A stretch of DNA of 64,000 nt from Thalia democratica (GCA_965202585.1 OZ241833.1:24242001-24306000); one strand, 5' to 3'; counted from the first letter of the stretch, positions 18,319-48,417 are shown. Notes: a model not told the origin generated them from the letters alone. Numbers and translations: made by a program.

Positions 18319-19111
18319 TATAACCACTGACCGATGGCTCGGTCGTAGTTAGGTTAGGTAATTGCTTATTATTGCTTTTCGCCTTAGTTTGCGACCGCGT
18401 CATGCGTTTTATGTCGTCCATCGATAAGCGTTTGGACGACATGAAATCTTAGTTAAAATATATATATATAATATTAAAACGTTCTAATATATATTCTAAT
18501 ATATATTCTAATATAATTATAAAACGTTCTAATGGAACGATCAATAACTTTAATGTATTGAGCTTATTTATAATCTAGTATCTAGAAAACAACTTTAAGT
18601 GAATGGTGAATTTATATACATTTAAAAACAAAACACGACAATGTGATAAAGTAACGTGATGAAGTTCTACCACAACTGACTCGAGGTTTTCTTAAGCTTA
18701 GTGACTGTACGCTGGTTACAATTTACAAAACTCAAGCAATTCTACTATCCTTTGCAGAGCTTCTATTCCCTTTGCCCAATCCGTCAACAACAACACAACA
18801 ACCCAAAACATCCTTTTAACACACTAAGGAAAACTTATTTATTTTTTTTACTCTCTTCTCTACTTACTACGTCACGCACAAGTCTTTCTGTAATTTTCCA
18901 CTTAAAACTTTGACTCCTTTGATGTAAATTCCACTTAACTTATCTTTGACTCCTTCATTGTACTTCTCGAAACAAGTAGTAAACTACTACTTGTTATACT
19001 ACCCTTCCTACCTTACTTAATTGATTTGTTTTTATCTTCTGAGTGCTAAAATATTTGAAGTTATTTTCTCGTTCTAGCTTTTGAAACAAGTAGAAGCTAC
19101 TACTTGTTATA
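18319..19111 (-). repeat. 3' LTR (793 bp), ends TATAAC...GTTATA
   Basis: Identical by eye to 40225-41017 and abutted by the PPT on its inner side. Confidence 0.95.
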
Positions 19112-19123
19112 CTACCCTTCCCT
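19112..19123 (-). promoter_or_regulatory. Polypurine tract
   Basis: The minus strand reads AGGGAAGGGTAG immediately before the 3' LTR start TATAAC. Confidence 0.85.
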
Positions 19124-19680
19124 AACTTCGTTTTTTTTTTTTTAATAATCTAAATGAGCACTTGTAGTTTGTATTTACTTTTGCTAGGCTAAAACCTCTA
19201 CCCAACTTAAGACACTGCACCCAAAAAAACCTCACTACAGTCGTTAGTAGAACTAAGAAAAAGTTAAATTACGAAATTAATTTTTTACAGGAAACTGTAA
19301 AACTTTACCTTAAAACATGAATTGTTCGAGACTCAAAATATGAGAAAATAAACACGAAAAAATTATGCTAGTATTTAAATTTACTGGAAGTCTCTATCAC
19401 TTCTTAATCTAAGTTTGAACAATGTTAATTTGGTTAAGCATGACAAAATAAAAAGCATTTTCATTGAAATAAAAATAAAATTCTTTAATAAAACAATAGT
19501 TTTCAGATTAATAGTTATTTTTAAATACTAAGAAAAACATTTTTTTGTAGAAATACACTAATAAAGTTTTTTAAAACGATTAAAAAAAATTAATTATAAG
19601 ATGTTAGCAATTACACACAATTTTTAAAACTGAAAAAAAATTAATTAATACCTAAGCTACAATTTGTCTTGTAAGTACGT

Positions 19681-19858
19681 ACACAGCTTCTCGTTGATAG
19701 GAACCTTCCGTTGCTGGAAAAGGAAATCTCTCGGACAAGGGGTTCGTTCTTCTGGGGGAAACTCGTAAAACACAGCTTCTCGTTGATAGGAACCTCCCGT
19801 TGCTGGAAAAGGAAATCTCTCGGACAAGGGGTTCGTTCTTCTGGGGAAAACTCGTAAA
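19681..19858. repeat. 89-bp tandem duplication in the 3' untranslated part of the element
   Basis: ACACAGCTTCTCGTTGATAGG...CTCGTAAA occurs at 19681 and 19770 with few mismatches. Confidence 0.9.
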
Positions 19859-19918
19859 ACCTTGGTGGAAAAGTGCTAGGGACTTAAAACTTAGCTTGAT
19901 TGAGAGGAAAACAGAGTG

Positions 19919-21997
19919 CTACATCGAACTCGGTTTGTCTTGTCCGAAAAACTCTGGTGTATTTAAATTTGTCTCATTTACACAAGGGAACCAATGCGAC
20001 AAATGATCTTCGTTTTTAAACGTTTCTTCTATTTCCGGAAAAGTTTTAGCTTCTTTAGAAACCGATTTCAAGGCCGTTCCCACCTGGAGGCAGTTCGAGA
20101 TTCCGTGCGACTGTTCCATAATCTCGGCTGTCCCATCTCTTTCATCTCCATTTTTCCAAATCTTTGATAATAACCCTCCGTCATTTGCTACTTTCTCTTT
20201 TTCTTTTTTTATAGATGACTTCGAGATTCCGTGCGACTGTTCCATGATCTCGGCTGTCCCATCTCTTTCATCTCCACTTTTCCAAATCTTTGATAATAAC
20301 CCTCCGTCATTTGCTACTTTCTCTTTTTCATTTTTTAAAGATGACTTTTGTTTTTTATTCAATTTTTTACTGTCTGTCTCAATCTCTTCCTTTCCTGTGT
20401 CTCTATATTTCATCTTGATATTTGGTTTATCCTCGGACGCAGTTCTTTTCACGACATTGATATCAATATCTCCACATTGAATAGAAAACAGGTGGTGTAT
20501 ATTTGTTTTTGCTTTGCAAAATCTCTCGAGTCCATCTTGAATGGTCAAGCAACTCATTTTTTCATCTTCTATATTTTTCAGTTTGAGCTCTTTAACTTGT
20601 TGTTTCCATTTGACTATTTCTTTACTATGTTTTTCTTCATGCTCTTTGTTTGCCTGTTTGAGTTCCTTTAACTCTTTCAAGAGATTTGTTATTCTTAGTT
20701 TTTTAGTTCTTAGTTTTTCTTGGATGTTTTCCTTTTTTCTCTTTTGCTTATTTAATCTTTCTTGTAATATTTCAATGGTATTGTTGGCATTAAGTATTTT
20801 GTCACAAAGCTCAGTTCCTTCCTTTCTATAATTTATTTCGTCCTGCCTTAAGTCATTTATAACTTCACTTTTTTTTCTAAGTTCGGCTTTTAACCTTTCT
20901 ACTTCAGTTCCCAAAAATTCCATTGCCCCTTTCACGCTAGAATCATTAAATGATTGTACAGCTTTCTTTATGAGTACTTCTTGTAAAAGTTCCACTAACT
21001 CATTTTCTTGGAGAGTTTCTTCCTCTTCATGTGTAACGTTTGAAAGATTTTTTTCATCCTCAATTACCATAACTTTTGTTGCATCCTTTTCTTTAATAAC
21101 CTCTTTTTGTTTGACCATTTTCTTGACATTTTTTTGGTCGTAGGCAAGGTGAGACTCTTTAGAATTTTTAACAAAACTTCCCACATCTTCGAGGTTGTTA
21201 GATCTTTCCTTTGCAACTTCCATTTCACTTAAAGTGTGCTTTTTTAGCTTAGTTGATGATTCATTTTCCACTCCTTCAGATATCTCCGTCTCTTGCATTT
21301 GAACTTTGCTATTTTCTTTTCGTTTCTCCTCCGTCGTATGTAAAATTTTTACACCAGATTGAGTTCGTACCTTTTGTGGTTTTGTTTCTTGAATCGTACC
21401 ATCTTCTTTTTGCTTTTTGTTAGTTGTCTGGGCTGCCTCTTCGCTAGTTGGCGTTCGTGCTCTTTTCGTTGGCATAGTAACCTGCTTCCCACTATTTCCT
21501 TTTTGTATGTTATTTGTCGAGGAAAATGTCCTATCTCCTGATTGCGTTTCTACTTTTCTTGATCTCGTAGCGCTGATATTTATTTTCATATTACTCTCCT
21601 GAATATTTTTTGATGTTGTCCATGACCCTTCATTAGATTGCCATCGTCTCGATGGCATTGTATTCCTACTCACATTCCTAGTTGGTTCGTATCTTGATTT
21701 GTTGAGTCTCATATCTTCTTCTCTTCTTGGCTGGTTATTTCTTAATGGATAGTTTGATCGTCTATAATATGAGGACCTGGAAGGTGGCGTTCTTCTATTA
21801 TCCCAGCGATAATGACTATTTGTTCGACGTATAATTCTTCTGTTTTCCGTTCTACCGTCATATCTTCTATCTTCAGAATCATATTTGTCTCTTCTGTGAT
21901 CACAATTTTTGTTTCCATCGATTTCTGTTAAACTATCAGTTTCGCTTGCCAACAAAGACACAGCGTCTTCGGATTTGTTCGTGCTGTTACAACTCAT
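19919..21997 (-). CDS. Orphan 692-aa accessory protein of the retroelement (R/S-rich N-terminus, central coiled coil, 2x42-aa C-terminal repeat)
   Basis: 2.08-kb open frame in very AT-rich DNA. It has a K/E-rich heptad region at about aa 360-480, an in-frame 126-bp duplication (20101/20227), and an AAAAATG start with a splice acceptor 20 nt upstream. Confidence 0.85.
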   Translation of the reverse strand: MSCNSTNKSEDAVSLLASETDSLTEIDGNKNCDHRRDKYDSEDRRYDGRTENRRIIRRTNSHYRWDNRRTPPSRSSYYRRSNYPLRNNQPRREEDMRLNKSRYEPTRNVSRNTMPSRRWQSNEGSWTTSKNIQESNMKINISATRSRKVETQSGDRTFSSTNNIQKGNSGKQVTMPTKRARTPTSEEAAQTTNKKQKEDGTIQETKPQKVRTQSGVKILHTTEEKRKENSKVQMQETEISEGVENESSTKLKKHTLSEMEVAKERSNNLEDVGSFVKNSKESHLAYDQKNVKKMVKQKEVIKEKDATKVMVIEDEKNLSNVTHEEEETLQENELVELLQEVLIKKAVQSFNDSSVKGAMEFLGTEVERLKAELRKKSEVINDLRQDEINYRKEGTELCDKILNANNTIEILQERLNKQKRKKENIQEKLRTKKLRITNLLKELKELKQANKEHEEKHSKEIVKWKQQVKELKLKNIEDEKMSCLTIQDGLERFCKAKTNIHHLFSIQCGDIDINVVKRTASEDKPNIKMKYRDTGKEEIETDSKKLNKKQKSSLKNEKEKVANDGGLLSKIWKSGDERDGTAEIMEQSHGISKSSIKKEKEKVANDGGLLSKIWKNGDERDGTAEIMEQSHGISNCLQVGTALKSVSKEAKTFPEIEETFKNEDHLSHWFPCVNETNLNTPEFFGQDKPSSM

Positions 21998-22017
21998 TTT
22001 TAATTAAACCAAAAATG

Positions 22018-22179
22018 CTGTTAAGAAGAATAATTGTTATCCAAACGTTATTATATGTATATTTTATTTATTTATTTATTATTTTTATATTTTTATATTT
22101 TTTAACCAACTCATGTTTTATTTTTTTATTTTTGGATAAATATTATTTTCAGTAAATTTTATAGGTTCATATTACTTAC
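22018..22179 (-). other. Putative 162-bp intron upstream of the 692-aa ORF
   Basis: GTAAGT donor (22179-22174), TTATTCTTCTTAACAG acceptor (AG at 22019-22018) and an extremely AT-rich interior. Confidence 0.55.
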
Positions 22180-22193
22180 TTTACTCTATTGTT

Positions 22194-22400
22194 TCAATGC
22201 ATTCTCAATTTAAGTATACTGTGGCTCTGTTTTTTTTTTTTTTTTTTTTTTTTTTTGAAAGTGATGTGATGAAGAAATAATGTGTTTAATATTATAATAA
22301 TTATCCCTGACCTTGTTGCTAATGAAGGAAAAAGGAAAAACAAAAAAAAAAATAATAAAACCAATATATACATGATCAGTAACGGCCACCTATTTCTCAT
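22194..22400 (-). CDS. Possible small hydrophobic ORF (68 aa) overlapping the env stop codon (ATGA)
   Basis: ATG overlaps the env TGA. A hydrophobic stretch is followed by poly-Lys that derives from an A27 run, so it may be compositional. Confidence 0.2.
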   Translation of the reverse strand: MRNRWPLLIMYILVLLFFFLFFLFPSLATRSGIIIIILNTLFLHHITFKKKKKKKKKQSHSILKLRMH

Positions 22401-24112
22401 TTTTTATCCCCCTCATTTGGTTTTTTTCCACATTTCTCCCTTAGTGTTTGAATAATAACAACAACAATTAAGATTGTTGCTATAATTGTATAAATATGTC
22501 CTAAAAGTCCTAAGATATTCTTAATTTTCTTCCAAATCGAATATTTAATTTTTTCCAGCATGGCCCTCACATTGTTGTAGTCCATAGTATGCGTTTCTGC
22601 CAGTAATTCTTCTATGTTGATTCCATCACTTATATATTCTTCCTTGGTAATTAACAACAAGTTCTTGAGTTGTTGCTGTGTAACATCTTCTTCAGACCAA
22701 GAAACTTCTTGTAAGTCTTCATTTAGGTTTTCCTCTAAGATGTCGAAACTTTTTTCCTCTAGTTCAACATTTTTTATTGTAATCTTTTTCAGTGCTGGTA
22801 TTTGATCGATTAAGGTATTGTTATTATATATTATCAAGCTGTTATTGAAACTAAATGTCTTTCGTTTAGTAGGTGTAACTGTAGAGCTAATTTTTTCCGT
22901 AAGAAATCTTCCTTGGCGTAGTGATGTAAGCTTTGCTTCCGTGCCAGTATAGGCCACAAATAGTGGCCTATCTGACACATGACCTTTATAATATAAATTA
23001 GGCTGCAAAACTGCTTGGACTTTTGAGCACCTCAGTTCTTTTAAAATCCCTCCTGCGAATATAGCCTGTACCTCTCTTTCGAGAAGATAAGACAAGACTT
23101 GAGATGGATTTAGACTTTGACTTCCCATAAGGGCTACTATATTTGCCCGTGCCATTTCACAGGTAACTAATTTAAAATAGTTCCTAAAATTTTCGCTGTT
23201 CAAAAACGATCCATGTGCAATAGATGTCATTGTGGCTTGAATATTTCGTAGTGATGCTGGTATATTATCATCTGCAGTTCCAATTGGCTCAATGTTGCTT
23301 TCCTCAGGAATTTCCAGCACATGATTGGTCATTGTACAAAAAAATTTCGATTTTTTCTTTTGTTTTAGGCAGGCTAATGATTTTGGTGAGCATTTCATCA
23401 GGTTAGATACAATTAAGTTTGTTTCGTCTAGTTCGAATAAGTTTCCTTTTGAAGTTTTATGAATTATTAGAGTTTTATTTTCACTCCTCGGTATAGTTTC
23501 ACAGGTTTTTTCTCTAGGTTCTACATAATTGATTCTCCAGTTTCCTGCTGTGCAAGTTTTGAATTTTCTACTGCAAAACAATTTGCCCAACGATATGTGA
23601 TGTAGTTCTTCTGTCACCACATTTTTTGTAATTGTTAGATAGTTTAATTCAACATTTTTTACTTCTATTAGGTTTCCAAACCATCCATATTCCGGTTCCA
23701 AAATGTTTTTCGTAGTCATGGATCCATCCGCGTTTGGTAAGAGTCTCCCAACCGAAGTGAAGTGTCTTTGTTCCCACAATTCACACTCCCTCTTTGTTAC
23801 TAACTGGTGTTCCGTTCTTATTAAGTTGCAGACATTACTGCCGAAAAGGTAATGTATGCAGTTATAAGTATCTTTTGTCATTCTGCAAGCTTTTGCCCCT
23901 AAGTTATACATTTGGTTAAAAGGTTTAAAAACCCTTACTGGGTATATTTTAGTAGTGTTTCCTTTGTTTATGCATTTCCCAGGGGGTATAATTTTGAACT
24001 GTTGCATTACCTCATTCTTGCAAAGGTCTATATATACCTTCCTTGTTATATCTGAATAGACCATAGCTAAGCAAAGTGTTGTTATCCATAATGTTTTCAT
24101 GACCAGCTTCAT
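22397..24112 (-). CDS. env: Env-like type I membrane glycoprotein, class III fusogen-like (herpes gB / chuvirus G-like), 571 aa
   Basis: Signal peptide at aa 1-20, Cys-rich ectodomain, aromatic loops YLFG (88-91) and YGWFG (142-146), a gB-like block CEMARANIVALMGSQSLNPSQVLSYLLEREVQAIFAGGILKELRCSKV followed by DRPL, N-glycosylation sequons (NTT, NKT, NNS, NNT), a TM at about aa 533-557 and a short basic tail. Confidence 0.88.
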   Translation of the reverse strand: MKLVMKTLWITTLCLAMVYSDITRKVYIDLCKNEVMQQFKIIPPGKCINKGNTTKIYPVRVFKPFNQMYNLGAKACRMTKDTYNCIHYLFGSNVCNLIRTEHQLVTKRECELWEQRHFTSVGRLLPNADGSMTTKNILEPEYGWFGNLIEVKNVELNYLTITKNVVTEELHHISLGKLFCSRKFKTCTAGNWRINYVEPREKTCETIPRSENKTLIIHKTSKGNLFELDETNLIVSNLMKCSPKSLACLKQKKKSKFFCTMTNHVLEIPEESNIEPIGTADDNIPASLRNIQATMTSIAHGSFLNSENFRNYFKLVTCEMARANIVALMGSQSLNPSQVLSYLLEREVQAIFAGGILKELRCSKVQAVLQPNLYYKGHVSDRPLFVAYTGTEAKLTSLRQGRFLTEKISSTVTPTKRKTFSFNNSLIIYNNNTLIDQIPALKKITIKNVELEEKSFDILEENLNEDLQEVSWSEEDVTQQQLKNLLLITKEEYISDGINIEELLAETHTMDYNNVRAMLEKIKYSIWKKIKNILGLLGHIYTIIATILIVVVIIQTLREKCGKKPNEGDKK

Positions 24113-24209
24113 TATACTATCTACCTTCCAGCTTAAATTTTCTTATTTATAACCAAAACGAGAGAGGTGGAGAGAAAAAAAATAGTTCGCCAAAAATTTT
24201 TTTTTTTTT

Positions 24210-24252
<43 letters not shown>

Positions 24253-24464
24253 CCAATCATCTTAGTATTGAGAGCGGAAAAATAACAACATCAAAAATAA
24301 AATTAATAATAAGCAAGTAACTTTAACTTCCACATTAATTACACTTCATATGATACACGGTAATTTTGTGTGACAATTTCAAGTGCTCGAGTTTAAAGTG
24401 ACATGGTTATGGAATTTCTCAAAAAGAATCATTTATCTGATATATACAAAATTAATACGATGGC

Positions 24465-24788
24465 TTAATTGGTCTCTCCCACCATTCCAAAATACGGTTG
24501 GTTATAAATGATGAAATACCTTAATTTCATCTCCAAATTGAATAGTGAAATATCCTGAAAACTTATCATGTGAGTAATTCCTACAAAACCTATTGCGTAC
24601 GAGCATTTCTCACTTACTTCGTTTTCAAAAAGGAAATTAAAATGGGTGCAGAAATTTTTTATCATATTACTGTTTGAACATTCATATAAATGAAAATTTT
24701 TATGTAAGAATTCTTTAAAGTTCTCATTCGAATTTATATAATTATAGAAGTCTTCTCCATATACGGGGTTAATCATAAGTAAGAACAT
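24465..24788 (-). CDS. Possible 107-aa accessory ORF upstream of env
   Basis: Same strand as the other element ORFs, with 3 Cys and non-repetitive sequence. It is short and has no recognisable motif. Confidence 0.35.
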   Translation of the reverse strand: MFLLMINPVYGEDFYNYINSNENFKEFLHKNFHLYECSNSNMIKNFCTHFNFLFENEVSEKCSYAIGFVGITHMISFQDISLFNLEMKLRYFIIYNQPYFGMVGETN

Positions 24789-24874
24789 TACAATTTTATC
24801 TAAAATAGTTATAATTTTTAGGGTGATTACTAATCAATATGCCTACAATAAATTTTACTTTGCTAAATTAGCTC

Positions 24875-27800
24875 AATTAAATTGAAGATGTAAAAATAAA
24901 AAAATAAAAAATTAGTGAGGGATGGAATAAAAATATGGCTAAAAAAAATACAAAACAAAACATATTCTGAGGTAAAACTACTTAATTAATTCAGTAATTC
25001 ATAAAAAAACTATAAACTTGTGTTTCGTAATTATAAATATAGACAATCATATTTAAACATACATTTTTATTATTAATTATATCTGCTTATTTGCTATTTA
25101 AATCTAAAAAAAAAATAACAGATATTATGATATTGAAATTCAATATTATTTAAAGTTAAGTAATTAGAAAAATTACATAAAAAAAACAAAAAACTTATAA
25201 CAAAACCTAAATATTGTTTTTTCAATTTTGTAATAAACTTGATATCCGTTTTTCCATGACCCTTTCAACTTCGACGTTTTTTTTTCTGACAGATGTCTCG
25301 TGGAATTGTCAAGCAAAAAGGTATATTCTTGTCTTCATCATGGACGTTTGAATTTAAAAGCAAAGTTTCTTTCGTAGAAACATCATCATAAAAAAATATT
25401 TCATTTGGAGTATCTTTTTCCAAATATTTTCGAGCAGTTTAGCTCGGAATGTTTTCATAGTTCAACTATCTTTATAAAATAATAAATATTTTTATTTCTA
25501 TTTAAGAAGTTTAATTAATTTCTATTTAGGTGAGTTCCCTCTCAACTTATTCATCCCCACATATCTTCCATATCAACTTATTCGTCTCCACACATATTCC
25601 ATATTAACTTTTTCGTCTCCACACTTCTTCCATATCAACTTATTCGTCTCCACACATATTCCATATCAACTTATTCGTCTCCACACATATTCCATATCAA
25701 CTTATTCGTCTCCACACTTCTTCCATATCAACTTATTCGTCCCCACACATATTCCATATTAACTTATTCGTCTCCACACATATTCCATATCAACTTATTC
25801 GTCCCCACACATATTCCATATCAACTTATTCGTCCCCACACAACGACTATCTTTCAGTTAATATTACTGGAGCTGATTACCCTTCCAAACTTAAAAAAAA
25901 AATTTTACCTCACATAAAATGATAAATATTTCTGAGTTCAGCCAACGAAGTTCGTTTAAAATATTGACAAATTGATAAGTTTCACTATGTAGTGTCACGG
26001 GAATAGAATTGCGTCCTCCAGACTACTAACTTTTAGTTTTTTATTTGTTTAAAGTTTATTTATTAAATGTTTTTTTTTTTTTTTTTATGTTTAACATAAT
26101 GTCATGATTTGACAACTTTAAAACACTTGATTTGCGGTTATTCTACTGGCTTAAAAAAAACTATATTTATATTATTTTTATGATATACGATGCACTAAGA
26201 TTAATATAATTAAGTGAATACTTAAATTCACTGTTAACATGCCATGCGAGGTTGTTTACGAGTTAAGTAGTTAAACTAGCAATTAAAAAAAAAAAAAAAA
26301 AAAAAAAAAGACCAGAACTTTGCGCTTTTAAAAAAAAAACAAAATTTCTTCATCATAAATGAATAACATCAACAATATATATATACAAGAAAAAAAAAAT
26401 AAGATAAATTAATATGAAAAACTACAACAGGCAGACTATACATATAGTAACTATAAATCATAATATATTTCTAAGCATGACATATTGAGAATAAACTTAA
26501 TAAGTAATTTGTAGTTTAAGACAATGAAATTTCTACATCGATGCTCAAACCCATAAAATGCCTTATGCATAATATCAACATTACTGTTACCTAAACAAAT
26601 CACAACCGCTTGTGAAGCTATAATCAAAAGTTTATATACCTATTTTTTATACACTTTTTAAGCAAACATTAGTGGAATTTTTTTAGACATTAAGTAAGAT
26701 TGTTAAAAAATAGATAAAGCTACTCAAACTTTATATTTTTTTATAATTCATTTTAATAAACTTAATTAATAAGTTATTAAAGCAAAATATTTATTATATT
26801 ATTTAGATAATTTAATGAAAATAATTAAATGATAATAGTTTTTTTAATCTAAATTCACAGAAATATGTTTGATAGTTATTGTATCATTATAGCAATCAAT
26901 AGTTAAATATTAAATGTATTAATTAACTTTTTACTAAATTATCATTATAACTTTATCAATAGATAATAATCACTTTAAGTTATCAAAATAGCTTTAACCC
27001 TACAGAGAAAACTAATTATTAAACTAGAAGTTTGCCGTACAATGTGACGTAATATATCAACAAATTGAGTTAAGTATTTCTTTTAAAATTATGTTACAAG
27101 AGACTAATAAGACAATTAGTTAATAAAATTAAGTGTTTTGGTAAGAAAAACTTCATAGTACTTTTAGGTTCTGTTTTGTTATCGATTTAAAGTCAAACGC
27201 CATACTAAATAAATTAAAGCCAGATGTTATGAAAATTTAACAATTGTTATTTACTCCTAACGTTTTAGATTTTATCGATAAGAAAATAAAATCCGAGTGA
27301 AATTTAAATTGATAAGAAAGTTTAACTTTTACGACAGTAACTATAAAAAATTATCAGATGCTTGTAAAACGAAAATAGCAAGTTTTATTTTGTTATTGTT
27401 TGAAAAATTTATTTTTAACAATTTTTTATGTGAAAATTTACAAAAACTGTCAATCATTATTCCTATTTGTTTATGATTAAAGTACATTTTTACTGCTGTA
27501 ACTTTATCTTAAAAAAATTCGATTTTTTATACGACGGGAATTTTATCACAAACAGGTGCGGTTAAATAATTTAAACTCCTTCCGTTGTGTTAACAATCTT
27601 TAAAACATTGTTAAAAAAGATTTAAAGTTAGGCTATAAGATCGTATTGTAATAATTTAAAGTTTGAAAATAAATATTCTTAAAGTTATTAAGTATTGTAT
27701 AGTTATTATACACAAATTGTAATTAGAATATACTAAAACATTCTAAACTTCTTATATTTTTAATGAAAATCACACTAACAAAAATAATAGCGACATAATT

Positions 27801-27918
27801 ATACACATGACATAGTTAAATAGTTAAATGTAAACAACAAAACTTTTTTATTTTTTTTTATTAAATAATATTTGCAACTTTTTTATGTTTTTTTTATCTT
27901 TTAATTTTATATTTTTCT
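24875..27918. repeat. Internal duplicated module, copy 1
   Basis: Blocks 24875-25240, 25845-26030, 26095-26425 and 27367-27918 recur in the same order at 28340-28760, 30048-30215, 31070-31674 and 31675-32226. Confidence 0.85.
25543..25841. repeat. 31-bp tandem array A (~10 copies)
   Basis: Unit approximately CAACTTATTCGTCTCCACACATATTCCATAT. Confidence 0.92.
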
Positions 27919-28339
27919 AAATTTAGTCTCTTACCTTACCTCTCTATTTTGTCTTCATTTTAAGATTTTTGTTTTTAATTCTATTTCTGTCTAGTATCAG
28001 TTTCTATCAATATTTTTATACTTAAGATTGTTATATCAACATTACCTTTTAATGTATCAATAATCATTTACGTCTATCATTCAGTACCTGTACCCACAAA
28101 CTCCTTCCGAAACCATTGGTAGAATAAAAAAAGATAAAAGATAAAAAAACAAGTAAATAGAAAAAAAATTGTACATAAGTTAATTATTTAACAAGAATAT
28201 GGTATTTTTAATTACATGTGTATATACTTTTCTTAATTAAAAATAATTAATTAAGTCAGTAATTCATAGTTTAAACAAAATTATAATTTTGAAATTAAAA
28301 AACTGTAAATTGTTGTTGGTGCTTAAAATATAAAATTTA

Positions 28340-31300: not shown

Positions 31301-32226
31301 AACATTTTTAAAGACAAAAGCAGGTAATGCTTTAACCTAAACAATCAAAAGTTTTAGGAATCATTACATACTTATAAATTCTCTAAAGGAAAACTTTTAA
31401 ACGTAATTATATAATTGAACTTGATTGACATTGACTTTGAAAACAAAGATTTATGATTCATTTTTGCCATTTTACGAGCATTTAGAGAAGCTGAAAATTC
31501 ACTGTTAAGATGCCATGCGAAGTTGCTTACGAGTTAAGTAGTTAAACTATCAATTTAAATAGGACCAGAATTTTGCGCTTTTTTAAAAACCAAAATTTCT
31601 ATATTATAAAACCAAATAATATCAACAATATATATACAAGAAAAAAAAAAAAAATAAATTAATATGAAAACTACAAACGAAAATAGCAAGTTTTATTTTG
31701 TTATTGTTTGAAAAATTTATTTTTAACAATTTTTTATGTGAAAATTTACAAAAACTGTCAATCATTATTCCTATTTGTTTATGATTAAAGTACATTTTTA
31801 CTGCTGTAACTTTATCTTAAAAAAATTCGATTTTTTATACGACGGGAATTTTATCACAAACAGGTGCGGTTAAATAATTTAAACTCCTTCCGTTGTGTTA
31901 ACAATCTTTAAAACATTGTTAAAAAAGATTTAAAGTTAGGCTATAAGATCGTATTGTAATAATTTAAAGTTTGAAAATAAATATTCTTAAAGTTATTAAG
32001 TATTGTATAGTTATTATACACAAATTGTAATTAGAATATACTAAAACATTCTAAACTTCTTATATTTTTAATGAAAATCACACTAACAAAAATAATAGCG
32101 ACATAATTATACACATGACATAGTTAAATAGTTAAATGTAAACAACAAAACTTTTTTATTTTTTTTTATTAAATAATATTTGCAACTTTTTTATGTTTTT
32201 TTTATCTTTTAATTTTATATTTTTCT
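28340..32226. repeat. Internal duplicated module, copy 2
   Basis: Diverged copy of 24875-27918 with insertions (e.g. about 31200-31495) and a deletion of about 940 bp. Block 31675-32226 is identical by eye to 27367-27918. Confidence 0.85.
28787..29703. repeat. 31-bp tandem array B (~29 copies)
   Basis: Unit CAACTTATTCGTCTCCACACATCTTCCAT(G/A)T; period 31 (e.g. 28921 and 28952), with a few 34-bp and shorter units. Confidence 0.95.
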
Positions 32227-33128
32227 TATTTATTCTTTATTTTACCAACTAAACAATTGAAAATAAAATAACTTAAAATTTAGTATATTGAGTAACAAAA
32301 AACATTTAAATGTTTTGATTATTTTGAACAAAATGAATCTAATAAATATTAGTTTGCACTTAAGCAAAATCGAAGTTACCTAACTATACATTATGTCAAA
32401 ATTATATAAAAAATCATTTTATAAATATTATCACTTTTCTGTTTAATTATTATCATCTCTAATATCTCGTATCAATATTTTATAGTTACGGTGTTAAACA
32501 TAACAACACATCAAAAAATAAAAAAAATTCCTATTTTTAAGAATTGAAGTCTATATTGATAACAATAATTATTGAGTGAAGTCATAACTGTTAATATTAT
32601 TCGTAAAGTAATTTGTTTTAAAACGCAGGATAACGTTAGATGTGTCTAAATGTGTTTCTAATAATGTTCCTCTATTTTTTTAAATGAAAGTATTCAATTT
32701 TAATTAACCCACATACTACAATAACATATAAGCTTAAACTTTGGATAATAAATTATAATTTAAGCAATCATATATTTGTTTAATAATATAAAATTTCAAC
32801 ATCTCTACTTATTGTTTATTTAATTATAATACCAAGTAGTAATAATAAAAAATATATAAAAAAAAAATTATCTAAATAATGAAAAAATAAAATAGTTACT
32901 ATCAGTTTAATTGATTTCTTCCGAATGAGCTGAATTATGTAGAAACAAGATTTCTTCAAAACTGGTCTAAAAGTTATTCCTATTCGTCTGCATCGTGACC
33001 TTCCTTTCATATTCCCTCACGCGCAGAATCAATAAGTATCCTAGATGTTGTCCTGCTTCCTGTCGATCGCTTAAATTTTCCTAAATGTTTCATAATCGAC
33101 TATTTAACACTATTTCCCGCTAAGTCTA

Positions 33129-33372
33129 CTGTGGCTCTGCATAATTTTTAGTTTCCATGTTCTAACTTAGGTCCAACGATAAGAAAAAGTAATGTATTTG
33201 ACCTTTCCCAATTTCTAGAATAGATTTTCTAAAAATAGTGTTAAGCTCTGCTGTGGCTCTGCATAATTTTTAGTTTCCATGTTCACTTAGGTCCAACGAT
33301 AAGAAAAGTAATGTATTTGACCTCTCCCAATTTCTAGAATAGATTTTCTAAAAATAGTGTAAAGCTCTGCTG
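33129..33372. repeat. 122-bp tandem duplication, with a third partial copy at about 33440-33487
   Basis: CTGTGGCTCTGCATAATTTTTAGTTTCCATG... occurs at 33129 and 33251. Confidence 0.88.
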
Positions 33373-35200
33373 ACCATTTTCTATACTTCATAAAGCTTCA
33401 TATGGCCAACAAACAAATACTTAAAAAATGTTTATCCACCAAAATTTTGTTTTCCATGTTCTCCTTTTAGGCCCAACGATAAGAAAGGATAAAAGTTAAT
33501 ATAAAAGTAAAAACTACTGCCTTATTGAAGTATGAAACTGACGTGTTGTAAAACAACGCGTACTTTATTAATTGATTATTATTCGCAACTCAAGAATTTA
33601 AATTATGGTACTATAATTTATCATAGATTAAAACAATTTTAAAATCATTAATAATTAAGTTAACATAAGTAGTGAGATTTCCTTACAAATATGTAATAAT
33701 ATAAAAAAAAAATAATATAATAATATTTAACTCTTAACTATTATAATACATATTTAACAAAACACAAAAAAAATCTCAGTATGCTACATATAATTCTAAT
33801 GTAACTAAAAAAAATTTTGAAGTCTGAGCTTTCCTTTCAGTTGATTTTTTTTATAAATGTTTCTTGAAAAGCAGATATATATGATCACAACAAAAGAAAA
33901 AAATCTTAAATATCTTCTATCAAAATTGTAACTACTTGATAAAAATTTAATTATCTTCAGTTTCTTGTTCAATTGAATTCCCCTGACTCCTATACTTGAA
34001 ATAATTCAATTTTGAATAAGTTGAAAAGTTTAACTTAATAAAAGCACTCAAGTTTTCTTAGCTTCTTAAATGATCCAAGTGCTGGCAAAATAAATTTATG
34101 CCACAACTTTTTAAATATTTTAATTTAAAAAGTTTTGTGTAAACATTTTCATTAATCTAACAATTTCTAATTTTAAGTATCGCGTTTTTTTTTTTTTTTT
34201 TTTTTTTATTATTTTTTATTTATCTAAATAGTTACAAATATTAATCAATTATTCGCCGACAAGCTAAAAATTTATACTAAATAATATCAGCTGGGAATAT
34301 TATTACAAAATAAAACAAAATAAAAACATTTATTTTTCAAAATCCTACAAAAAATTTAAAAAATTTGTTTCACTAATTATATTCCCATGTTAATTAAATG
34401 TCACAATTTCGAATACAAATCCTTTGTGTATAACATCGCATATTAAAAAATTAAAATATTCGTTTGCACTTATTAACAAAATTTATTTAAAAACAAATTT
34501 TTATTCAAAAGCTAATTTTTATTCTCATGCTTTACTAATTTCTATTGACAAAAAGTTTCATATTATATTACAAAGTTGTTAAATGAATGCTATAGCATCT
34601 TATGCATTTATATAATATGTTAAATAAAATCTGAAACAATATTTATTTACTCACCCATCGATACTTTATACTCGTAACATCGATACAAGATTTATAAATA
34701 CTGTTAATACATAATATAATACATTATTCTAAAATTAATAGTTTATAATATTAATTATTCAAAAATTTTTTATAAGTTTTATGATTTTTGGAAATTTTTG
34801 GAAATTTTTATTATTTTTTATATTTTTTATTTTTATTTTATTTTTATTTTATTTTTATTTTATTTTTATTTTATTTTTATTAAAATTTTTTTATTATTAT
34901 ATTATGGACAAAATAAAAAGAATTAATTACATGCAATAAGATGAAAAAGTAACACAACAAGTTGATTACCATCGCTTGTTTAAGCTTAAACAGGCCTTAC
35001 TAAATTAACACAAAAAAAAAAATCTTAATAAATAAGTATTTCGCACCCAATTGCTTATTGTAACGAATCACACAGCTATGCTTTAATATTAAAACTATTT
35101 TTATATATCATGCTAACTAAAACAATATTGTACGAATAAAATATTTTGAACATGTCAATCTGATTAATGTTAATTCCTACTCTCAATTCAAAACTTACTT

Positions 35201-38200
35201 TTAATCGGATTCATCGTATGTGGTAGTGTCTATATCTGCGTAGTTTAGTTCAATATTTCTTTCCCTCAAATTGTATGCAGCCGTAGGTCCCAATTTGTTA
35301 CCCTCCGCGTCGAGTTCCTCACGAGGGAAATACCCTTTTACGTTTCTTAATGAGACTTTTATCGGTTTACCATTTTTTTCTATGATCATGGAGTGATCGG
35401 AATAAGAAAGTATTGGGTACGGGCCGTGATATTGTGCACTCAGATGTGATTTATTCTTTTTTCGAATCCACACTTTCTCACAGTCAAAAAGACCAGGCTC
35501 ATAATAAGTATGCTTTTCTGTGTAGCATTTATGTTTTCTATATGCATTCGACATTGTATGAAGGAAGAAATTTGTTTCATAAGTGTCAATCTCCTTATGG
35601 TTGTTGCTGACCTTGTTGAAAAATATCCTACCACTTATATTTGTGCACGTTCCTAATGCTAATTGCGACGGAGTAAACAGATTCCCTTCAACAAACGAGT
35701 TGTTAATGGATGTAGTTATCAGAGGTAAGAGCATAGACCATTTTTCTTTATCGACTAACGTTCTTAATGCAACATTAATACTTCTGTGTTGTCTTTCAAC
35801 AAAACCATTACTTTCCGGACTATAAGGTGGTACGTATCGATGGTCTATACCTAATTGTTGGAATACTTCCTTGAGAAGGCTATTATTAAACTCACATCCA
35901 TTGTCTGTGACAATAACTTGTGGTACTCCAAAAATCCCGCACCACGATTGTATCAGCGCATTTTTTACTGTCTGAGCTTTCTTATTAGGTAAAGGTGTAG
36001 TAACCAAAAATCCGGTACCTCTGTCTTTGATAGTCATAATATATTTGTTATCATCTGAAATTACATTCATTGGACCAATAAGATCCACATGAATAAATTG
36101 GAAACGTTCTGTATTCTTTGGATACAGACCTATTTTAGGTCTATTGTGTCTAAAAGTTTTAGTAGCTTGGCACTCGGCACAGCTCTTACACCAATATTTT
36201 ATGTCAGTCTTCAAAGTTGGCCACCAGTAATCCTTTGCAGTCGCTATTATAGATCTTTCTACTCCCAAATGTAGATATCCGTGAGCTAATTCAAATGCTG
36301 TCAAACGTAATATCGAGGGTAAGATTATACGTTGGTTATCTCCTTCTTGGATTACTGCTAAGTCCTCCGATCCCACATATTTTATTTCCTTTTTTAATTC
36401 TTTGGCTTTCTTTAATAATAAAGGTTCGTTTTTTTGAAGTTGGGCTATTTCTAACTTATTTAATGATGCCGCTGTTATTAACTCTTCTTCATTTTCAGTC
36501 AGATCATCATCTGTGTCAGAACAGCTCAAATCTGTGTTTGAGTTATGAACATAGTCTGGATCGTTATCTTGTAGGGCTATGTGCATGGATGTGCTATGAG
36601 GTGGTCTGCTTAATATATCGGCTACTATGTTATCGGCACCAGCTATATGTTTTATAAAAGGGTTAAACTCCTTGATTGCCGCGATGTAACGTTGTTCCAT
36701 TGGTGACTGATCTTTAATTGGATTTGTGATTGCTTTTTCTACTGACTGACTGTCGGTCCTAATAATAAGTTCACGACCAATTATCCTACTTTGAAAATGT
36801 TTCAAACTTAAATACAGAGCCCTTAGTTCTTTATAAAAAGTAGATCTATATCTCTTAAGGCTAGGAAGTTTTTTCGAAAAGAACGCAAGAGGCCTTTTAT
36901 TTCCATCTATTCCTTCCTGCTCCAACACCGCCCCCACATGAGTTTCGGATGCGTCTGAGTATAATATTAATGGCTTATTGTGATCTTCATAAGCTAAGGT
37001 TGCTGCCTTTGCCAACACCTTCAATGTATCCTTATATGCATTAATTTGGAATTGATTTAGTTTTAGTGGTTTTTTGTTAGTAGCTTTGGGTCCTCCAGAC
37101 AATTCGTTAAGTGGTGCTATGATTTCAGATAATCTTGGAATGTGATGGTAATAATAATTGACTAAACCGATGAATCTTTTTAGTTCCTTTCTATTTGTTG
37201 GCCTCGGTAAATTAATAATTGCTTCTACTTTGCTATCCATGACACCTATACCATCGGCTCCAATTGAATGTCCTAAAAAGTCTACTTTTGATTCTGCTAT
37301 TATACACTTCTTAGCGTTCAAATACAGTCCACTATCTTGTAATGTTTGAAGCACCTTTCTAAGATGCAATTCGTGATCTTTTTTAGATTCACTAAAAACA
37401 AGTATGTCATCCAGATAAACATAAACAAAACCTGTGCAAGGAGTCAAAATATCTTCCATCATCATCTGAAAACGCATCGGCGCATTCATGAGGCCAAATG
37501 TTGTGCGATGAGGGATAAACACACCATGATGAGCAATTATAGCAGCATATTTTTGAGAGTTTGGGTGAATTGGAAGACTGTAGTACGCTTCTTTTAAGTC
37601 AAGACAGGAAAAAATTTTTGACCCATTTGGAATAAACTCAGGAAGCTCATCAATGCGAGGCAATGGGTATGAGATTGGGTTTGTGTGGGCATTTAAGGTT
37701 GTATAATCTATGCAGATTCTTATATTTCCATCCTTTTTTGGTACCATCGTAATTGGTGATACATATATTGCTTCTTGTCCTCTTGACATTGCCCCTCTTA
37801 TTATTAAATCGTTAAAATTTTCCTCAACTATTTTACGTCTCATTCCGTTGCATTTACGTGCTTTAATCATTCTTGGTACTAGATTATTTACTTTTATCTC
37901 AAGTGAATGTCCATGTTTAACTGGTTTATTGTAATCTGGTTCCATCGTAAGTTCTTTGAATTCCTCAAGTATGCTTTTTATATTGTTTTTGTCATCTGAT
38001 TTCTCTTGGTAACTAGTTATTTTGAGTTTTTTACATGGTCCCTCAGCAGCTGTGGTTAATTCCCCAGCTGTATATAGTCTGGCTTTACGATTTAAATTGT
38101 ATTCAAGAATTTCGGAAGTGTGAGGTGAAATAATTAGTTTGTTAGCTTTGAGTATATCCAATCCAATAATTCCATAGTCCCCCGATTCCTTGGTAACCCA

Positions 38201-40348
38201 AAATGTGGCTTTTTTTAAAAGCATATTTCCAATGCTGAGATCCACATCTACACTCCCTATTGGATAAATGGTTGAGTTTCCCAAACCCTTTATTGTTTTA
38301 CTTTTTGGCTGGAAATATTGATTTATTCCATTAGTTAACATTTTCGGTAAGATAGACACTTCACTACCTGAATCGATTAATAACAAGACTCCCGATTTTT
38401 TTTCCAGTGCGAATAGGAGGTTTTTAGGAAGATTTTTTATATCGGTTGTTTCTGTTTTATTTTCTAAAACTGAGCATTGTTTAACCGGAACATTACTTTT
38501 GTCCAAAACCAATTCGTTTATCTTTTTCAAAATATTTTCTAGATTGTTGTTTATTTGATCTGTATTTCCCGAACATGTAGGCATTGTACTTTCATGAATA
38601 TCATTCTCTTTCGTTCCTTTCATGCTTACAGTTAATGAGCTCTTTTGATTTACAAAACTATTTTCTGTGTTATCCACTGGTATTGCTTTGTAACTGCAGT
38701 TTTTATTATCTTCGTCGTATAACTTAGTTTCCTTGTCCTTTGTTAAGTCTGTTTGCATAACAGCAACGTTGCAACTTTTCTGTTGTTGGTGATTCGCAAT
38801 TAGATGATTCATCTTACAATCTTTCCTATTGCAAGAGTAAGCCTCTTTTCCGTATCGCCAATGTTGATAGCATAAGTCACCCTGGTTTGTAAACGGATTT
38901 TGTTTTGCACTAGTTTGTTGGTAGTTCCAATTATTGTTATTGTTTTTATTGTGTGAGTAAAAATCTGGAATTTGATGATTTCGATACGGTCTAAAATTTC
39001 CGTTGTTGTTATTGTTGTAATTAAAATTATTGTTTTTATGTCCGATATTTCGATTGTTATACCTTCTAGGATTTGTACTATAAATTTGATTAGTTCGTGG
39101 CGTTCTATCATAATTTACCGGATTGGAAGGTATATTTTCCTCTTGACAATTCCAAATACCTTGTGTCCTTCTCTTGAAGATATCATAGTTTTCATTAAAG
39201 TTTTCTCTGATTTTTGTTTTCAATGAAAGTGGACTTAAGTAGTAGCAGAAAAATTTTATGCGGTCAACTTTGCTGCTTTCTGCGAATTTAGTTGCATCTG
39301 CGAGGAATACACCAAACGGGGTAGAAGCATCATATTGTGGTACTTTACTGAGAATATCGCTCAGAGAGTCGTCCCTATTAACACAAAAATCACAGAATGA
39401 TTCGAAGTTTCGATGTTCCCTGTCCACTAATCTATAAAAATTCGAAACATCCTCAGTTGGCCATTTTTCGATAAGTATGTTATACTTCACGTAATCATCA
39501 CGTATGTTAAGTCGATGAAATTCTTCCTGGAAATACCCCAATACATCTCTAGGATTTTTTACTTTCTCTATTCTGTTGAATTTTTTTATTAATCTGTCCA
39601 TTTCCATATATTTTCCATATACTGTATGGTTTGAGTTAATATTATCAAAATTTCTATTATAAATATTTTGGTTCTGCATATAATCTTCGTCGCAAAAGTT
39701 GTTTTTATTTGCATACATGTTATTACTGATGTGATGCGTCATGTTATTATCTGTATGTATAAAGTTTTGACTTGTGATCAGATTTTCCAGTTTATTATTA
39801 TTTTCACAAATTTTCTCCCTTATTTTACGAATTTCTTCTTCCGCCTGTTGTCTTCTAAGGTTTTCTTCGCTTATCTTAAGTAATTTATTCATTTCTTCTA
39901 TTTGTATTTCATAGTCTGTTTTCTTAATAATGTTTAAATTATCCTGGGTCGAAATATTATTCTGTTGAAAAAAATTTTTTTGATCATTTTCTAACTTCGT
40001 CGAAGGTATTTTATCCATTTCTGTTTTTTTATTTGCCTGTATAATTCGATCATTAAATAAAGTTCTAGCTTCGTCATAAGTAGGTGTATTGACCTGAAAA
40101 GTTAATCCTTCTGTATCAGTTTTTTTACCTTCTTCGCCCTTATTTTCAACATTTCTATCATTCGGTCCGCTATTCGCTGTTTCATCGAAAGGTGGTACAT
40201 CTGTGCTTGTAGGGAGGACGCCATTATAACCACTGACCGATGGCTCGGTCGTAGTTAGGTTAGGTAATTGCTTATTATTGCTTTTCGCCTTAGTTTGCGA
40301 CCGCGTCATGCGTTTTATGTCGTCCATCGATAAGCGTTTGGACGACAT
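35201..40348 (-). CDS. gag-pol: Gag-Pol polyprotein (Gag with CHCC knuckle, aspartic protease, RT, RNase H, integrase), 1715 aa, single frame
   Basis: CYQHWRYGKEAYSCNRKDC; LLIDSGS; RICIDY...LPRI...LDLKEAY...FGLMNAP...YLDD; SDAS...KELRA...RTDS; H..HLG...WW...C..C; VDL/TDNG/VER catalytic triad; HGPY. The PR-RT-RH-IN order is Ty3/Gypsy. Confidence 0.97.
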   Translation of the reverse strand: MSSKRLSMDDIKRMTRSQTKAKSNNKQLPNLTTTEPSVSGYNGVLPTSTDVPPFDETANSGPNDRNVENKGEEGKKTDTEGLTFQVNTPTYDEARTLFNDRIIQANKKTEMDKIPSTKLENDQKNFFQQNNISTQDNLNIIKKTDYEIQIEEMNKLLKISEENLRRQQAEEEIRKIREKICENNNKLENLITSQNFIHTDNNMTHHISNNMYANKNNFCDEDYMQNQNIYNRNFDNINSNHTVYGKYMEMDRLIKKFNRIEKVKNPRDVLGYFQEEFHRLNIRDDYVKYNILIEKWPTEDVSNFYRLVDREHRNFESFCDFCVNRDDSLSDILSKVPQYDASTPFGVFLADATKFAESSKVDRIKFFCYYLSPLSLKTKIRENFNENYDIFKRRTQGIWNCQEENIPSNPVNYDRTPRTNQIYSTNPRRYNNRNIGHKNNNFNYNNNNNGNFRPYRNHQIPDFYSHNKNNNNNWNYQQTSAKQNPFTNQGDLCYQHWRYGKEAYSCNRKDCKMNHLIANHQQQKSCNVAVMQTDLTKDKETKLYDEDNKNCSYKAIPVDNTENSFVNQKSSLTVSMKGTKENDIHESTMPTCSGNTDQINNNLENILKKINELVLDKSNVPVKQCSVLENKTETTDIKNLPKNLLFALEKKSGVLLLIDSGSEVSILPKMLTNGINQYFQPKSKTIKGLGNSTIYPIGSVDVDLSIGNMLLKKATFWVTKESGDYGIIGLDILKANKLIISPHTSEILEYNLNRKARLYTAGELTTAAEGPCKKLKITSYQEKSDDKNNIKSILEEFKELTMEPDYNKPVKHGHSLEIKVNNLVPRMIKARKCNGMRRKIVEENFNDLIIRGAMSRGQEAIYVSPITMVPKKDGNIRICIDYTTLNAHTNPISYPLPRIDELPEFIPNGSKIFSCLDLKEAYYSLPIHPNSQKYAAIIAHHGVFIPHRTTFGLMNAPMRFQMMMEDILTPCTGFVYVYLDDILVFSESKKDHELHLRKVLQTLQDSGLYLNAKKCIIAESKVDFLGHSIGADGIGVMDSKVEAIINLPRPTNRKELKRFIGLVNYYYHHIPRLSEIIAPLNELSGGPKATNKKPLKLNQFQINAYKDTLKVLAKAATLAYEDHNKPLILYSDASETHVGAVLEQEGIDGNKRPLAFFSKKLPSLKRYRSTFYKELRALYLSLKHFQSRIIGRELIIRTDSQSVEKAITNPIKDQSPMEQRYIAAIKEFNPFIKHIAGADNIVADILSRPPHSTSMHIALQDNDPDYVHNSNTDLSCSDTDDDLTENEEELITAASLNKLEIAQLQKNEPLLLKKAKELKKEIKYVGSEDLAVIQEGDNQRIILPSILRLTAFELAHGYLHLGVERSIIATAKDYWWPTLKTDIKYWCKSCAECQATKTFRHNRPKIGLYPKNTERFQFIHVDLIGPMNVISDDNKYIMTIKDRGTGFLVTTPLPNKKAQTVKNALIQSWCGIFGVPQVIVTDNGCEFNNSLLKEVFQQLGIDHRYVPPYSPESNGFVERQHRSINVALRTLVDKEKWSMLLPLITTSINNSFVEGNLFTPSQLALGTCTNISGRIFFNKVSNNHKEIDTYETNFFLHTMSNAYRKHKCYTEKHTYYEPGLFDCEKVWIRKKNKSHLSAQYHGPYPILSYSDHSMIIEKNGKPIKVSLRNVKGYFPREELDAEGNKLGPTAAYNLRERNIELNYADIDTTTYDESD
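40211..40223 (-). promoter_or_regulatory. Primer binding site (TGGCGTCCTCCCT), 1 nt inside the 5' LTR end and within the gag frame
   Basis: TGG (complement of tRNA CCA) directly follows the LTR end GTTATA plus one A. It predicts a primer ending ...GGAGGACG-CCA; tRNA identity (possibly Asn) is not verified. Confidence 0.75.
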
Positions 40349-41017
40349 GAAATCTTAGTTAAAATATATATATATAATATTAAAACGTTCTAATATATAT
40401 TCTAATATATATTCTAATATAATTATAAAACGTTCTAATGGAACGATCAATAACTTTAATGTATTGAGCTTATTTATAATCTAGTATCTAGAAAACAACT
40501 TTAAGTGAATGGTGAATTTATATACATTTAAAAACAAAACACGACAATGTGATAAAGTAACGTGATGAAGTTCTACCACAACTGACTCGAGGTTTTCTTA
40601 AGCTTAGTGACTGTACGCTGGTTACAATTTACAAAACTCAAGCAATTCTACTATCCTTTGCAGAGCTTCTATTCCCTTTGCCCAATCCGTCAACAACAAC
40701 ACAACAACCCAAAACATCCTTTTAACACACTAAGGAAAACTTATTTATTTTTTTTACTCTCTTCTCTACTTACTACGTCACGCACAAGTCTTTCTGTAAT
40801 TTTCCACTTAAAACTTTGACTCCTTTGATGTAAATTCCACTTAACTTATCTTTGACTCCTTCATTGTACTTCTCGAAACAAGTAGTAAACTACTACTTGT
40901 TATACTACCCTTCCTACCTTACTTAATTGATTTGTTTTTATCTTCTGAGTGCTAAAATATTTGAAGTTATTTTCTCGTTCTAGCTTTTGAAACAAGTAGA
41001 AGCTACTACTTGTTATA
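40225..41017 (-). repeat. 5' LTR (793 bp); contains a candidate TATA box (TTATAAATAAG, 40479-40469) and the gag ATG
   Basis: Identical by eye to 18319-19111 and abutted by the PBS on its inner side. Confidence 0.95.

Positions 41018-44572: not shown

Positions 44573-48417
<3,845 letters not shown>

Follow-up and report, generated by a model that had tools for sequence, protein, structure and literature searches.

A 22.7-kb env-carrying Ty3/gypsy-type retroelement with a long pol-env spacer and an orphan fourth gene in Thalia democratica

Structure of the Locus

We analysed a stretch of 64,000 nt from the genome of Thalia democratica (GCA_965202585.1, OZ241833.1:24242001-24306000), referred to below as the window, which harbours a retroelement of 22.7 kb with an envelope gene (env). 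Positions are counted in this 64-kb window, and the element runs on its minus strand. Within one pair of long terminal repeats (LTRs), gag, pol and env lie uninterrupted and in one orientation; a long spacer separates pol from env, and a fourth gene, the open reading frame (ORF) ORF692, follows env. The window contains 0 N and no other copy of the element. Listed from the 5' to the 3' side of the element, the principal features are:

41018..41021, target-site duplication (TSD) on the 5' side of the element, GTGT on the + strand
40225..41017, minus strand, 5' LTR of 793 nt with the termini TATAAC...GTTATA and TATA-like boxes inside
40212..40223, minus strand, site resembling a primer-binding site (PBS), a 12-mer starting with TGG, 1 base past the 5' LTR
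35201..40348, minus strand, gag-pol, one unbroken ORF of 1715 amino acids (aa)
24113..35200, minus strand, spacer, 11,088 nt between pol and env
22397..24112, minus strand, env, 571 aa, with signal peptide, cysteine-rich ectodomain, C-terminal membrane anchor and short tail
19919..21997, minus strand, ORF692, orphan fourth gene of 692 aa downstream of env
19681..19860, tandem repeat in the 3' untranslated region, 89-nt unit, 2 copies
19112..19123, minus strand, site resembling a polypurine tract (PPT), a purine run touching the 3' LTR, with an A13 run before it
18319..19111, minus strand, 3' LTR of 793 nt, same sequence as the 5' LTR
18315..18318, TSD on the 3' side of the element, GTGT

The two LTRs are 100% identical, with 0 differences in 793 nt. 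The exact direct repeat spans 794 nt (18318-19111 and 40224-41017), including one base adjoining the LTR that agrees by chance. Agreement of a 4-nt TSD has by itself a chance of about 1/256; a perfect repeat of 793 nt together with a matching TSD is far beyond chance. The initial annotation of this window had reported 793-bp LTRs free of mismatches with a GTGT TSD, a PBS and a PPT at the correct inner junctions, and an unbroken gag-pol followed by about 11 kb of spacer, a fusogen-like gene and a large orphan gene, all co-oriented. We confirmed both the LTRs and the TSD on the minus strand, found the PBS-like TGG 12-mer and the PPT-like purine run in place, and recovered all the remaining parts in the arrangement given.

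The LTR ends carry a 6-nt inverted repeat (TATAAC...GTTATA) and not the TG...CA expected of Ty3/gypsy elements. TG...CA is the usual form of LTR termini without being strictly defining. Close copies and relatives of the element, designated by L-numbers, were obtained as contigs from marine metagenomes of the European Nucleotide Archive (ENA), largely from Tara Oceans. In one of these relatives, L020, the LTR also ends in ...GTTATA and is followed by a PBS with the same beginning.

The internal region (19112-40224) comprises 21,113 nt, with a coding share of 42% and a non-coding share of 58%. Giant LTR retrotransposons are delimited by an internal region of >20 kb (PMC6431247), and at 21.1 kb the element deserves the attribute giant under which it was first described. 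The best account of the locus is probably a single recent insertion, into intergenic DNA, of a full-length env-carrying Ty3/gypsy retroelement that moved as a whole unit. With identical LTRs, the gypsy order of its Pfam domains and Ty3 as best match in the PDB (see below), its earlier classification as an intact env-bearing Ty3/Gypsy element holds. If these terms are taken as broadly as by Chary and Hayashi (eLife 2026, PMC13524379), it conforms to the errantivirus or endogenous-retrovirus type.

LTR positions 98-143 (window 40875-40920, likewise in the 3' LTR) hold a second copy of the PPT with the 5' terminus of the LTR, 91% alike over 47 nt, which suggests an old duplication of the junction between the PPT and U3, the first segment of the LTR. 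A sigma-70 promoter scan of the LTR, inapplicable to a eukaryote, scored at shuffle level, and an Rfam scan of the window returned nothing.

The gag-pol Gene

The unbroken gag-pol frame contains the following domains:

39104..39607, minus strand, Gag core, 42-43% identity to L001 and L020
38816..38872, minus strand, Gag knuckle C-x2-H-x9-C-x4-C (CHCC), a similar motif being present in L019
38147..38386, minus strand, aspartic protease (DSGS), weak Pfam match
37262..37744, minus strand, reverse transcriptase (RVT_1, YLDD), Pfam match
36665..37048, minus strand, RNase H-like domain, Pfam matches to two RNase H-like models including RT_RNaseH
35816..36319, minus strand, integrase, H2C2 zinc domain and catalytic core, Pfam Integrase_H2C2 and rve

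Protease (residues 655-734), reverse transcriptase (869-1029), RNase H (1101-1228) and integrase (1344-1511) follow each other in the gypsy order. The closest PDB match of pol is yeast Ty3 Gag-Pol (7q5b, 4.7e-74), with the Ty3 reverse transcriptase next and matches to a caulimovirus and to foamy viruses far behind (1e-35 or weaker). Named database matches are of gypsy type as well (transposon 412, K02A2.6-like). Judged by these matches, reverse transcriptase and integrase appear nearer to Ty3/gypsy than to Bel/Pao, Copia or retroviruses. Gag is without PDB or Pfam match; the CHCC knuckle ascribed to it beforehand is found. Measured against close metagenome copies by the Nei-Gojobori method, which was used throughout, the ratio of nonsynonymous to synonymous substitution rates (dN/dS) of gag-pol is 0.23.

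The gag-pol frame is open from an ATG within the 5' LTR and runs through the PBS (window 40224-40348); its first methionine past the PBS is residue 111.

Env, a Class III Type Fusion Glycoprotein

In the product of env, a signal peptide (hydrophobic N-terminus) and a C-terminal anchor are recognised directly from the sequence. The tail has about 15 residues, and 14 cysteines are invariant across the family. With a dN/dS of 0.09, env is under strong purifying selection. A pyrimidine tract ending in AG lies about 30 nt before its ATG.

Neither the single Env sequence nor a profile gave a credible match in sequence searches of the PDB, and an exact look-up of the window's Env protein returned no match. 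Env scores 16.9 bits against Pfam Glycoprotein_B (PF00606), below the gathering cut-off of 43; 7 of the 12 Env family members match this model sub-threshold, and 3 of the 12 match the rhabdovirus fusion domain instead. When the Env model was compared with the PDB by Foldseek, the best 50 of 117 matches (E <= 0.001) were all class III fusogens, the best at 2e-9. Among the matches listed are glycoprotein B (gB) of Epstein-Barr virus (EBV), human cytomegalovirus (HCMV) and herpes simplex virus (HSV), glycoprotein G of vesicular stomatitis virus (VSV) and rabies virus, and Thogoto virus Gp. In BFVD, glycoproteins of chu-, rhabdo-, nya- and orthomyxo-like viruses were matched together with gB (best 7.5e-11).

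The gB and G types are indistinguishable for Env, so that class III fusogen is the safe wording: from its model, Env can safely be addressed as a class III (gB/G-type) viral fusion glycoprotein. The label gB-like given to it at first is right as regards the class III fusogen and too specific as regards gB, given that glycoproteins of negative-strand RNA viruses match about equally and Pfam gB is not reached. Env appears to work like a class III fusogen, but its membership in herpesvirus gB proper is not supported.

Two poly(A) tracts bracket env:

24197..24250, minus strand (sense), A39 TT A13 poly(A) tract, 85 nt before the ATG of env
22230..22256, minus strand (sense), A27 tract, 141 nt past the env stop

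Several metagenome contigs terminate at poly(A) runs bracketing env, and relatives with 56-58% env identity (L004, L007, L009, L014, L015) show a run of A12-15 at about 110-130 nt past the stop codon of env. These tracts could be module junctions or products of slippage.

ORF692, an Orphan Gene

Two features were distinguished within ORF692:

20507-20941, minus strand, predicted long helix
20094-20347, minus strand, tandem duplication of a 126-nt unit

Its structure model combines a disordered part rich in Arg, Ser and Asn (residues 1-230), a confident helix of 145 residues (353-497) and a remainder of low confidence. Pfam gave nothing above noise. Searched with HMMER in word-free mode, 1.84 billion representative proteins yielded 7 matches, all of them own copies or fragments with at least 57% identity, which bears out its earlier designation as a second large gene of orphan character. 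Scans of JGI metagenomes with ORF692 and with the env alignment, and of IMG/VR with env, returned no relative, and ORF692 reveals no similarity to a 525-aa ORF of L004.

An intact copy of 630 aa in L016 is 98.3% identical and has one 126-nt repeat fewer. In two comparisons dN/dS amounts to 0.51 (p = 0.04) and 0.43 (p = 2.5e-4). As read from these alignments, ORF692 is a real gene under moderate to loose purifying selection that has persisted through divergence. A pyrimidine tract followed by CAG is located about 24 nt before its ATG and is conserved in L022, an 84% identical copy. By analogy, ORF692 most likely encodes a regulatory or RNA-handling accessory protein, comparable to CERV of the Cer1 element or to retroviral Rev/Rex.

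The pol-env Spacer

The spacer between pol and env contains a large duplication, further tandem repeats and a relic of coding sequence:

25268..25435, minus strand, relic of 56 codons in sense orientation, matching the L020 gag-protease linker motif (4e-10)
25535..27940, duplication unit A, composed of a 31-nt satellite (25535-25842, 10 copies) and segments X, Y and Z (Z at 27367-27940)
28785..32246, duplication unit B, composed of the 31-nt satellite (28785-29706, 29 copies) and segments X, Y and Z (Z at 31675-32246)
33121..33372, tandem repeat, 119-nt unit, 2.1 copies

Outside the tandem arrays, the GC content of the spacer is about 20-24%, and no strand skew is seen. There is no sense ORF above 107 aa. 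ORF107 gave nothing above noise in Pfam and has no similarity to a 154-aa ORF of L004; exact look-ups of eight small spacer ORFs returned no match. The spacer shows neither similarity to the 41 kb of window flanks nor any remnant of the element's own proteins. The motif matched by the relic, about 40 aa long, occurs in L020 (3531-4022) in four tandem in-frame copies between gag and protease.

Units A and B are 78-92% alike in X, Y and the satellite, while their Z segments, 4.3 kb apart, agree perfectly over 552 nt. One boundary of the Z repeats is sharp, the other fuzzy, and they lack a TSD. By this pattern, A and B are an old duplication in which the Z segment may have been recently duplicated or homogenised, possibly in place.

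A/T homopolymer runs of >=15 nt occur five times in the window, all five inside the element, and four of the five are poly(A) in sense orientation. Strong tandem arrays number 6 in the element versus 2 in the flanks, which are 1.8x longer. We infer that the spacer belongs to the element and owes its form to template switching and slippage by the reverse transcriptase.

The view that the 552-nt repeats are LTRs of a nested element was rejected as unproven: they have no TSD, no TG/CA ends, a fuzzy boundary and no ORF between them. Inverted repeats in the spacer proved to be merely A/T-rich low-complexity pairs. Three overlapping antisense ORFs of 275-316 aa in the 31-nt satellite (window 28774-29740, plus strand) are repeat artefacts and not genes.

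Relatives in Marine Metagenomes

In the marine metagenomes the family forms 12 env clusters (37-96% identity) and about 27 pol clusters (38-97%); among the named proteins of annotated genomes, even the nearest reach no more than 25-28% identity. Two contigs represent close copies of the element in part. L018 covers gag-pol with 97.3% identity and continues for 226 nt of spacer; L017 covers env with 93.7% identity, together with 128 nt of spacer upstream and 95 nt downstream. Both spacer ends are common to independent copies, these 226 nt and 128 nt being all of the spacer that was seen elsewhere.

The family is abundant and diverse in the Tara Oceans metagenomes. A common planktonic host carries here a clade that is largely undescribed, because essentially no named relatives exist in annotated protein sets.

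The nearer env relatives L004/L005 and L006 (56-58% identity) lack pol within 4.8 kb and carry other conserved, uncharacterised ORFs ahead of env. Two ORFs of about 525 aa and about 150 aa (L004 1669-4337, L005, L006 1-1852) are 54-64% identical between the lineages; in Pfam they gave nothing above noise, and they are unrelated to ORF692 and the spacer. The clade thus seems to experiment with its accessory genes.

Movement as One Unit and Alternative Explanations

We propose that the 5' LTR of the element would drive a genomic RNA translated into Gag-Pol, and that Env and ORF692 would be made from subgenomic RNAs. These might arise via splicing to the pyrimidine-tract/AG sites before each ATG or from a promoter within the spacer, as in Tor4b of Oikopleura. 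Splicing and an internal promoter are indistinguishable here, because donor-like hexamers are at chance level; with 9 found versus about 11 by chance, including one right past the pol stop, we dropped them as evidence. ORF692 would act in regulation or RNA handling, by analogy with CERV of Cer1 or with Rev/Rex. Template switching and slippage would have enlarged the spacer and led to its segmental duplication, satellites, homopolymers and the piece that stems from a related element. The most recent step, a 4.3-kb duplication or homogenisation, may have occurred in place.

The initial annotation had concluded from the identical LTRs that the whole 22-kb RNA was reverse-transcribed very recently. 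This is the simplest reading, but it is unproven: the 552-nt spacer repeat is of the same young age as the two LTRs and could have formed at the locus itself.

A number of observations weigh against the movement of one functional 22.7-kb unit as proposed here. No metagenome contig of another copy connects pol with spacer, env, ORF692 and LTR; the contigs with env and those with ORF692 fall 72 nt short of each other. Since these contigs are short and end at homopolymers, a second copy could not be traced over the full distance between its LTRs. The distant relatives L001/L002 (pol 61%, env about 37-40%) are compact gag-pol-env elements with a gap of 750 nt and no ORF692, and L019, with the order env-LTR-gag-pol, is a permuted compact element, also with no ORF692. 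In base composition the spacer equals host intergenic DNA, and it holds the perfect 552-nt direct repeat. Long perfect direct repeats tend to be lost during retroviral reverse transcription. Because of this instability, the last 4.3-kb duplication or homogenisation may date from integration or later. A tRNA complementary to the PBS was not identified, a tRNA scan of the window having yielded no tRNA gene. The diverged ORF692 copies L021 (90%) and L022 (84%) carry one frame change each, and the function of ORF692 is deduced from nothing but its composition and a single helix. The frequency of splice-donor-like hexamers is that expected by chance. Finally, the AlphaFold model of Env is confident for residues about 40-280 only, with a mean pLDDT (predicted local distance difference test) of 53 and TM-scores (template modelling scores) of about 0.2.

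The element might move whole and yet carry spacer and ORF692 as roleless passengers, the latter transduced or newly arisen and slowly decaying, which we consider possible though rather unlikely. ORF692 has no homologue beyond its own copies among the 1.84 billion representative proteins, is mostly predicted to be disordered, is missing from the more distant relatives and shows a frame change in each of two diverged copies; its dN/dS of 0.43-0.51 indicates a constraint far weaker than that on env. However, this ratio is significantly below 1 (p = 2.5e-4), the frame is open in two copies (692 and 630 aa), the acceptor-like site before it is conserved, and fragments down to 57% identity speak for persistence through substantial divergence.

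The spacer itself raises the question of when its 11 kb were gained. A compact gag-pol-env(-ORF692) unit could have been inserted first and most of the 11 kb could then have grown in place through nested non-coding insertions, segmental duplication and satellite expansion, such that the mobile unit would be far below 22.7 kb. The compactness of the more distant relatives is compatible with this course of events, as is a spacer without strand skew whose GC content equals that of host intergenic DNA; the spacer also contains the old duplication of units A and B (78-92%), and its perfect 552-nt repeat, with one boundary sharp and the other fuzzy, looks like recent duplication or gene conversion in place. 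Nevertheless we hold it to be improbable, because 0 LTR differences in 793 nt leave little time for a gain of about 10 kb within a target of about 750 nt. We found in the spacer neither TSDs nor terminal inverted repeats nor coding remains of foreign elements, and it is also unlike the 41 kb of flanking DNA. Moreover, both of its ends recur in independent copies, and in the nearer env relatives L004 and L006, env is likewise preceded by several kb other than pol.

At the other extreme, the element may stand for a lineage of complex giant errantiviruses. An RNA of about 22 kb would then be the actual replicating unit, ORF692 would be a regulator of export or packaging whose role arose independently of Rev, Rex and CERV, and the spacer would be a functional module in which the 40 copies of the 31-nt unit might serve as internal promoter, insulator-like array or small-RNA decoy. 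Elements of this kind would be missed systematically by surveys with a capped pol-env distance. Taken jointly, these propositions form a speculative reading with a low probability of being correct.

An assembly artefact, in which a partial gag-pol copy and a partial env-ORF692 copy were joined through repeats and no single 22.7-kb molecule exists, would have typical misjoin sites at hand in the satellites, homopolymers and the perfect 552-nt repeat, but is very unlikely in view of exactly two co-oriented LTRs with matching 4-nt TSDs, PBS-like and PPT-like sites at the correct inner junctions, a gap-free window and ordinary host genes in the flanks.

Comparison with Known Retroelements

Ty3/gypsy elements with a gB-type Env have been published across most animal phyla by Chary and Hayashi (eLife 2026, PMC13524379). 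The present element resembles their ancient errantiviruses in the order of gag, pol and env between LTRs, with a putative PBS in place of their tRNA-type PBS. Its Env shares with theirs the signal peptide, the ectodomain, the C-terminal anchor, the class III fold and conserved cysteines, and intact ORFs, young copies and marine invertebrate hosts are further common traits. It differs from them by a fourth gene after env and by its dimensions. The survey was limited to a pol-env gap of <=1 kb, or 3-5 kb when extended, and to regions of <=10 kb (PMC13524379), whereas the gap is 11,088 nt here, gag to env span about 18 kb and the element measures 22.7 kb. With the pol-env distance capped, the survey therefore could not have found the present architecture, and the element exposes a blind spot of this published census of env-carrying gypsy elements.

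A systematic pol-env space is found in Tor4b of Oikopleura dioica, a Ty3/gypsy-like element with env (Henriet et al. 2015, PMC4402516). TSDs of 4-5 nt, near-identical LTRs and a marine planktonic host are likewise in good agreement with our findings. The env of Tor4b is transcribed from a promoter within the pol-env space (PMC4402516), which provides a model for the present element. By their description, however, Tor elements differ: their spaces are not described as 11 kb long or satellite-rich, nor is a gene after env. The intergenic DNA around the present element, for comparison, has only 21-25% GC.

With regard to size, an internal region of >20 kb, tandem repeats and accessory ORFs are shared with Burro of planarians and Ogre of plants (PMC6431247). 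Burro is a giant gypsy element whose env has homology to mononegavirus-type glycoproteins, and the same review also lists the occurrence of ORFs downstream of env (PMC6431247). In Ogre-type elements, the untranslated regions act as a source of satellite DNA (PMC7004042). The sources of the extra length differ. Burro owes its size to a polyprotein of about 5000 aa, in which env lies between gag and pol in the same frame, unlike in the present element, and Ogre owes it in part to LTRs of 2-6 kb, whereas the excess described here is one non-coding pol-env block.

As to the fourth gene, the Ty3/gypsy element Cer1 of Caenorhabditis elegans also carries a lineage-specific, non-enzymatic accessory gene near its 3' end (Sun et al. 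2023, PMC10309623). CERV is made from spliced RNA and is required for the export of unspliced genomic RNA (PMC10309623). The likeness of ORF692 to CERV is one of position and kind alone, and the Cer1 paper gives CERV as the extra gene of Cer1 and describes no functional env. LTR elements of bdelloids carry extra ORFs too (PMC5408684), but the bdelloid ORF3s are mostly enzymes.

The element had at first been presented as an unrecognised combination of giant size, gB-like Env and a second large accessory gene. This cannot be upheld, as gypsy elements with a gB-type Env (Chary and Hayashi), Burro, the space of Tor4b and post-env ORFs are already published. What is unusual is the 11-kb spacer in combination with an orphan fourth gene; env-carrying gypsy elements, giant size, a pol-env space and ORFs after env have each been published before.

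If the 22.7-kb unit does move whole, its RNA would rank with the longest that an animal gypsy-type reverse transcriptase is known to copy, and its excess length would be mostly non-coding, as opposed to coding in Burro and long LTRs in Ogre. ORF692 is a further candidate for the very short list of invertebrate retrovirus-like accessory genes.

Flanking Genes and Further Observations

Two uninterrupted host genes are located in the flanks:

13426-15918, minus strand, ClC-2-type chloride channel gene, single uninterrupted ORF of 830 aa, GC content at third codon positions (GC3) 0.69
42498-43175, plus strand, mu-class glutathione S-transferase (GST) gene, single uninterrupted ORF of 225 aa, GC3 0.89

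Both identify the flanks as animal DNA (2e-190 to ClC-2 and 4e-45 for the mu-class GST). An exact look-up of the window's chloride channel protein returned no match. GC3 reaches 0.69-0.89 in these host genes versus 0.31 in the genes of the element, whose codon usage is therefore far from that of the host genes; the surrounding DNA has 21-25% GC.

Further away from the element, a 15-nt tandem repeat with about 21 copies (window 50177-50499) is open in several frames on both strands and gave nothing in Pfam. A tubulin C-terminal domain (1.4e-13) in an ORF fragment at window 44822-45175, minus strand, probably marks one exon of a host tubulin gene.

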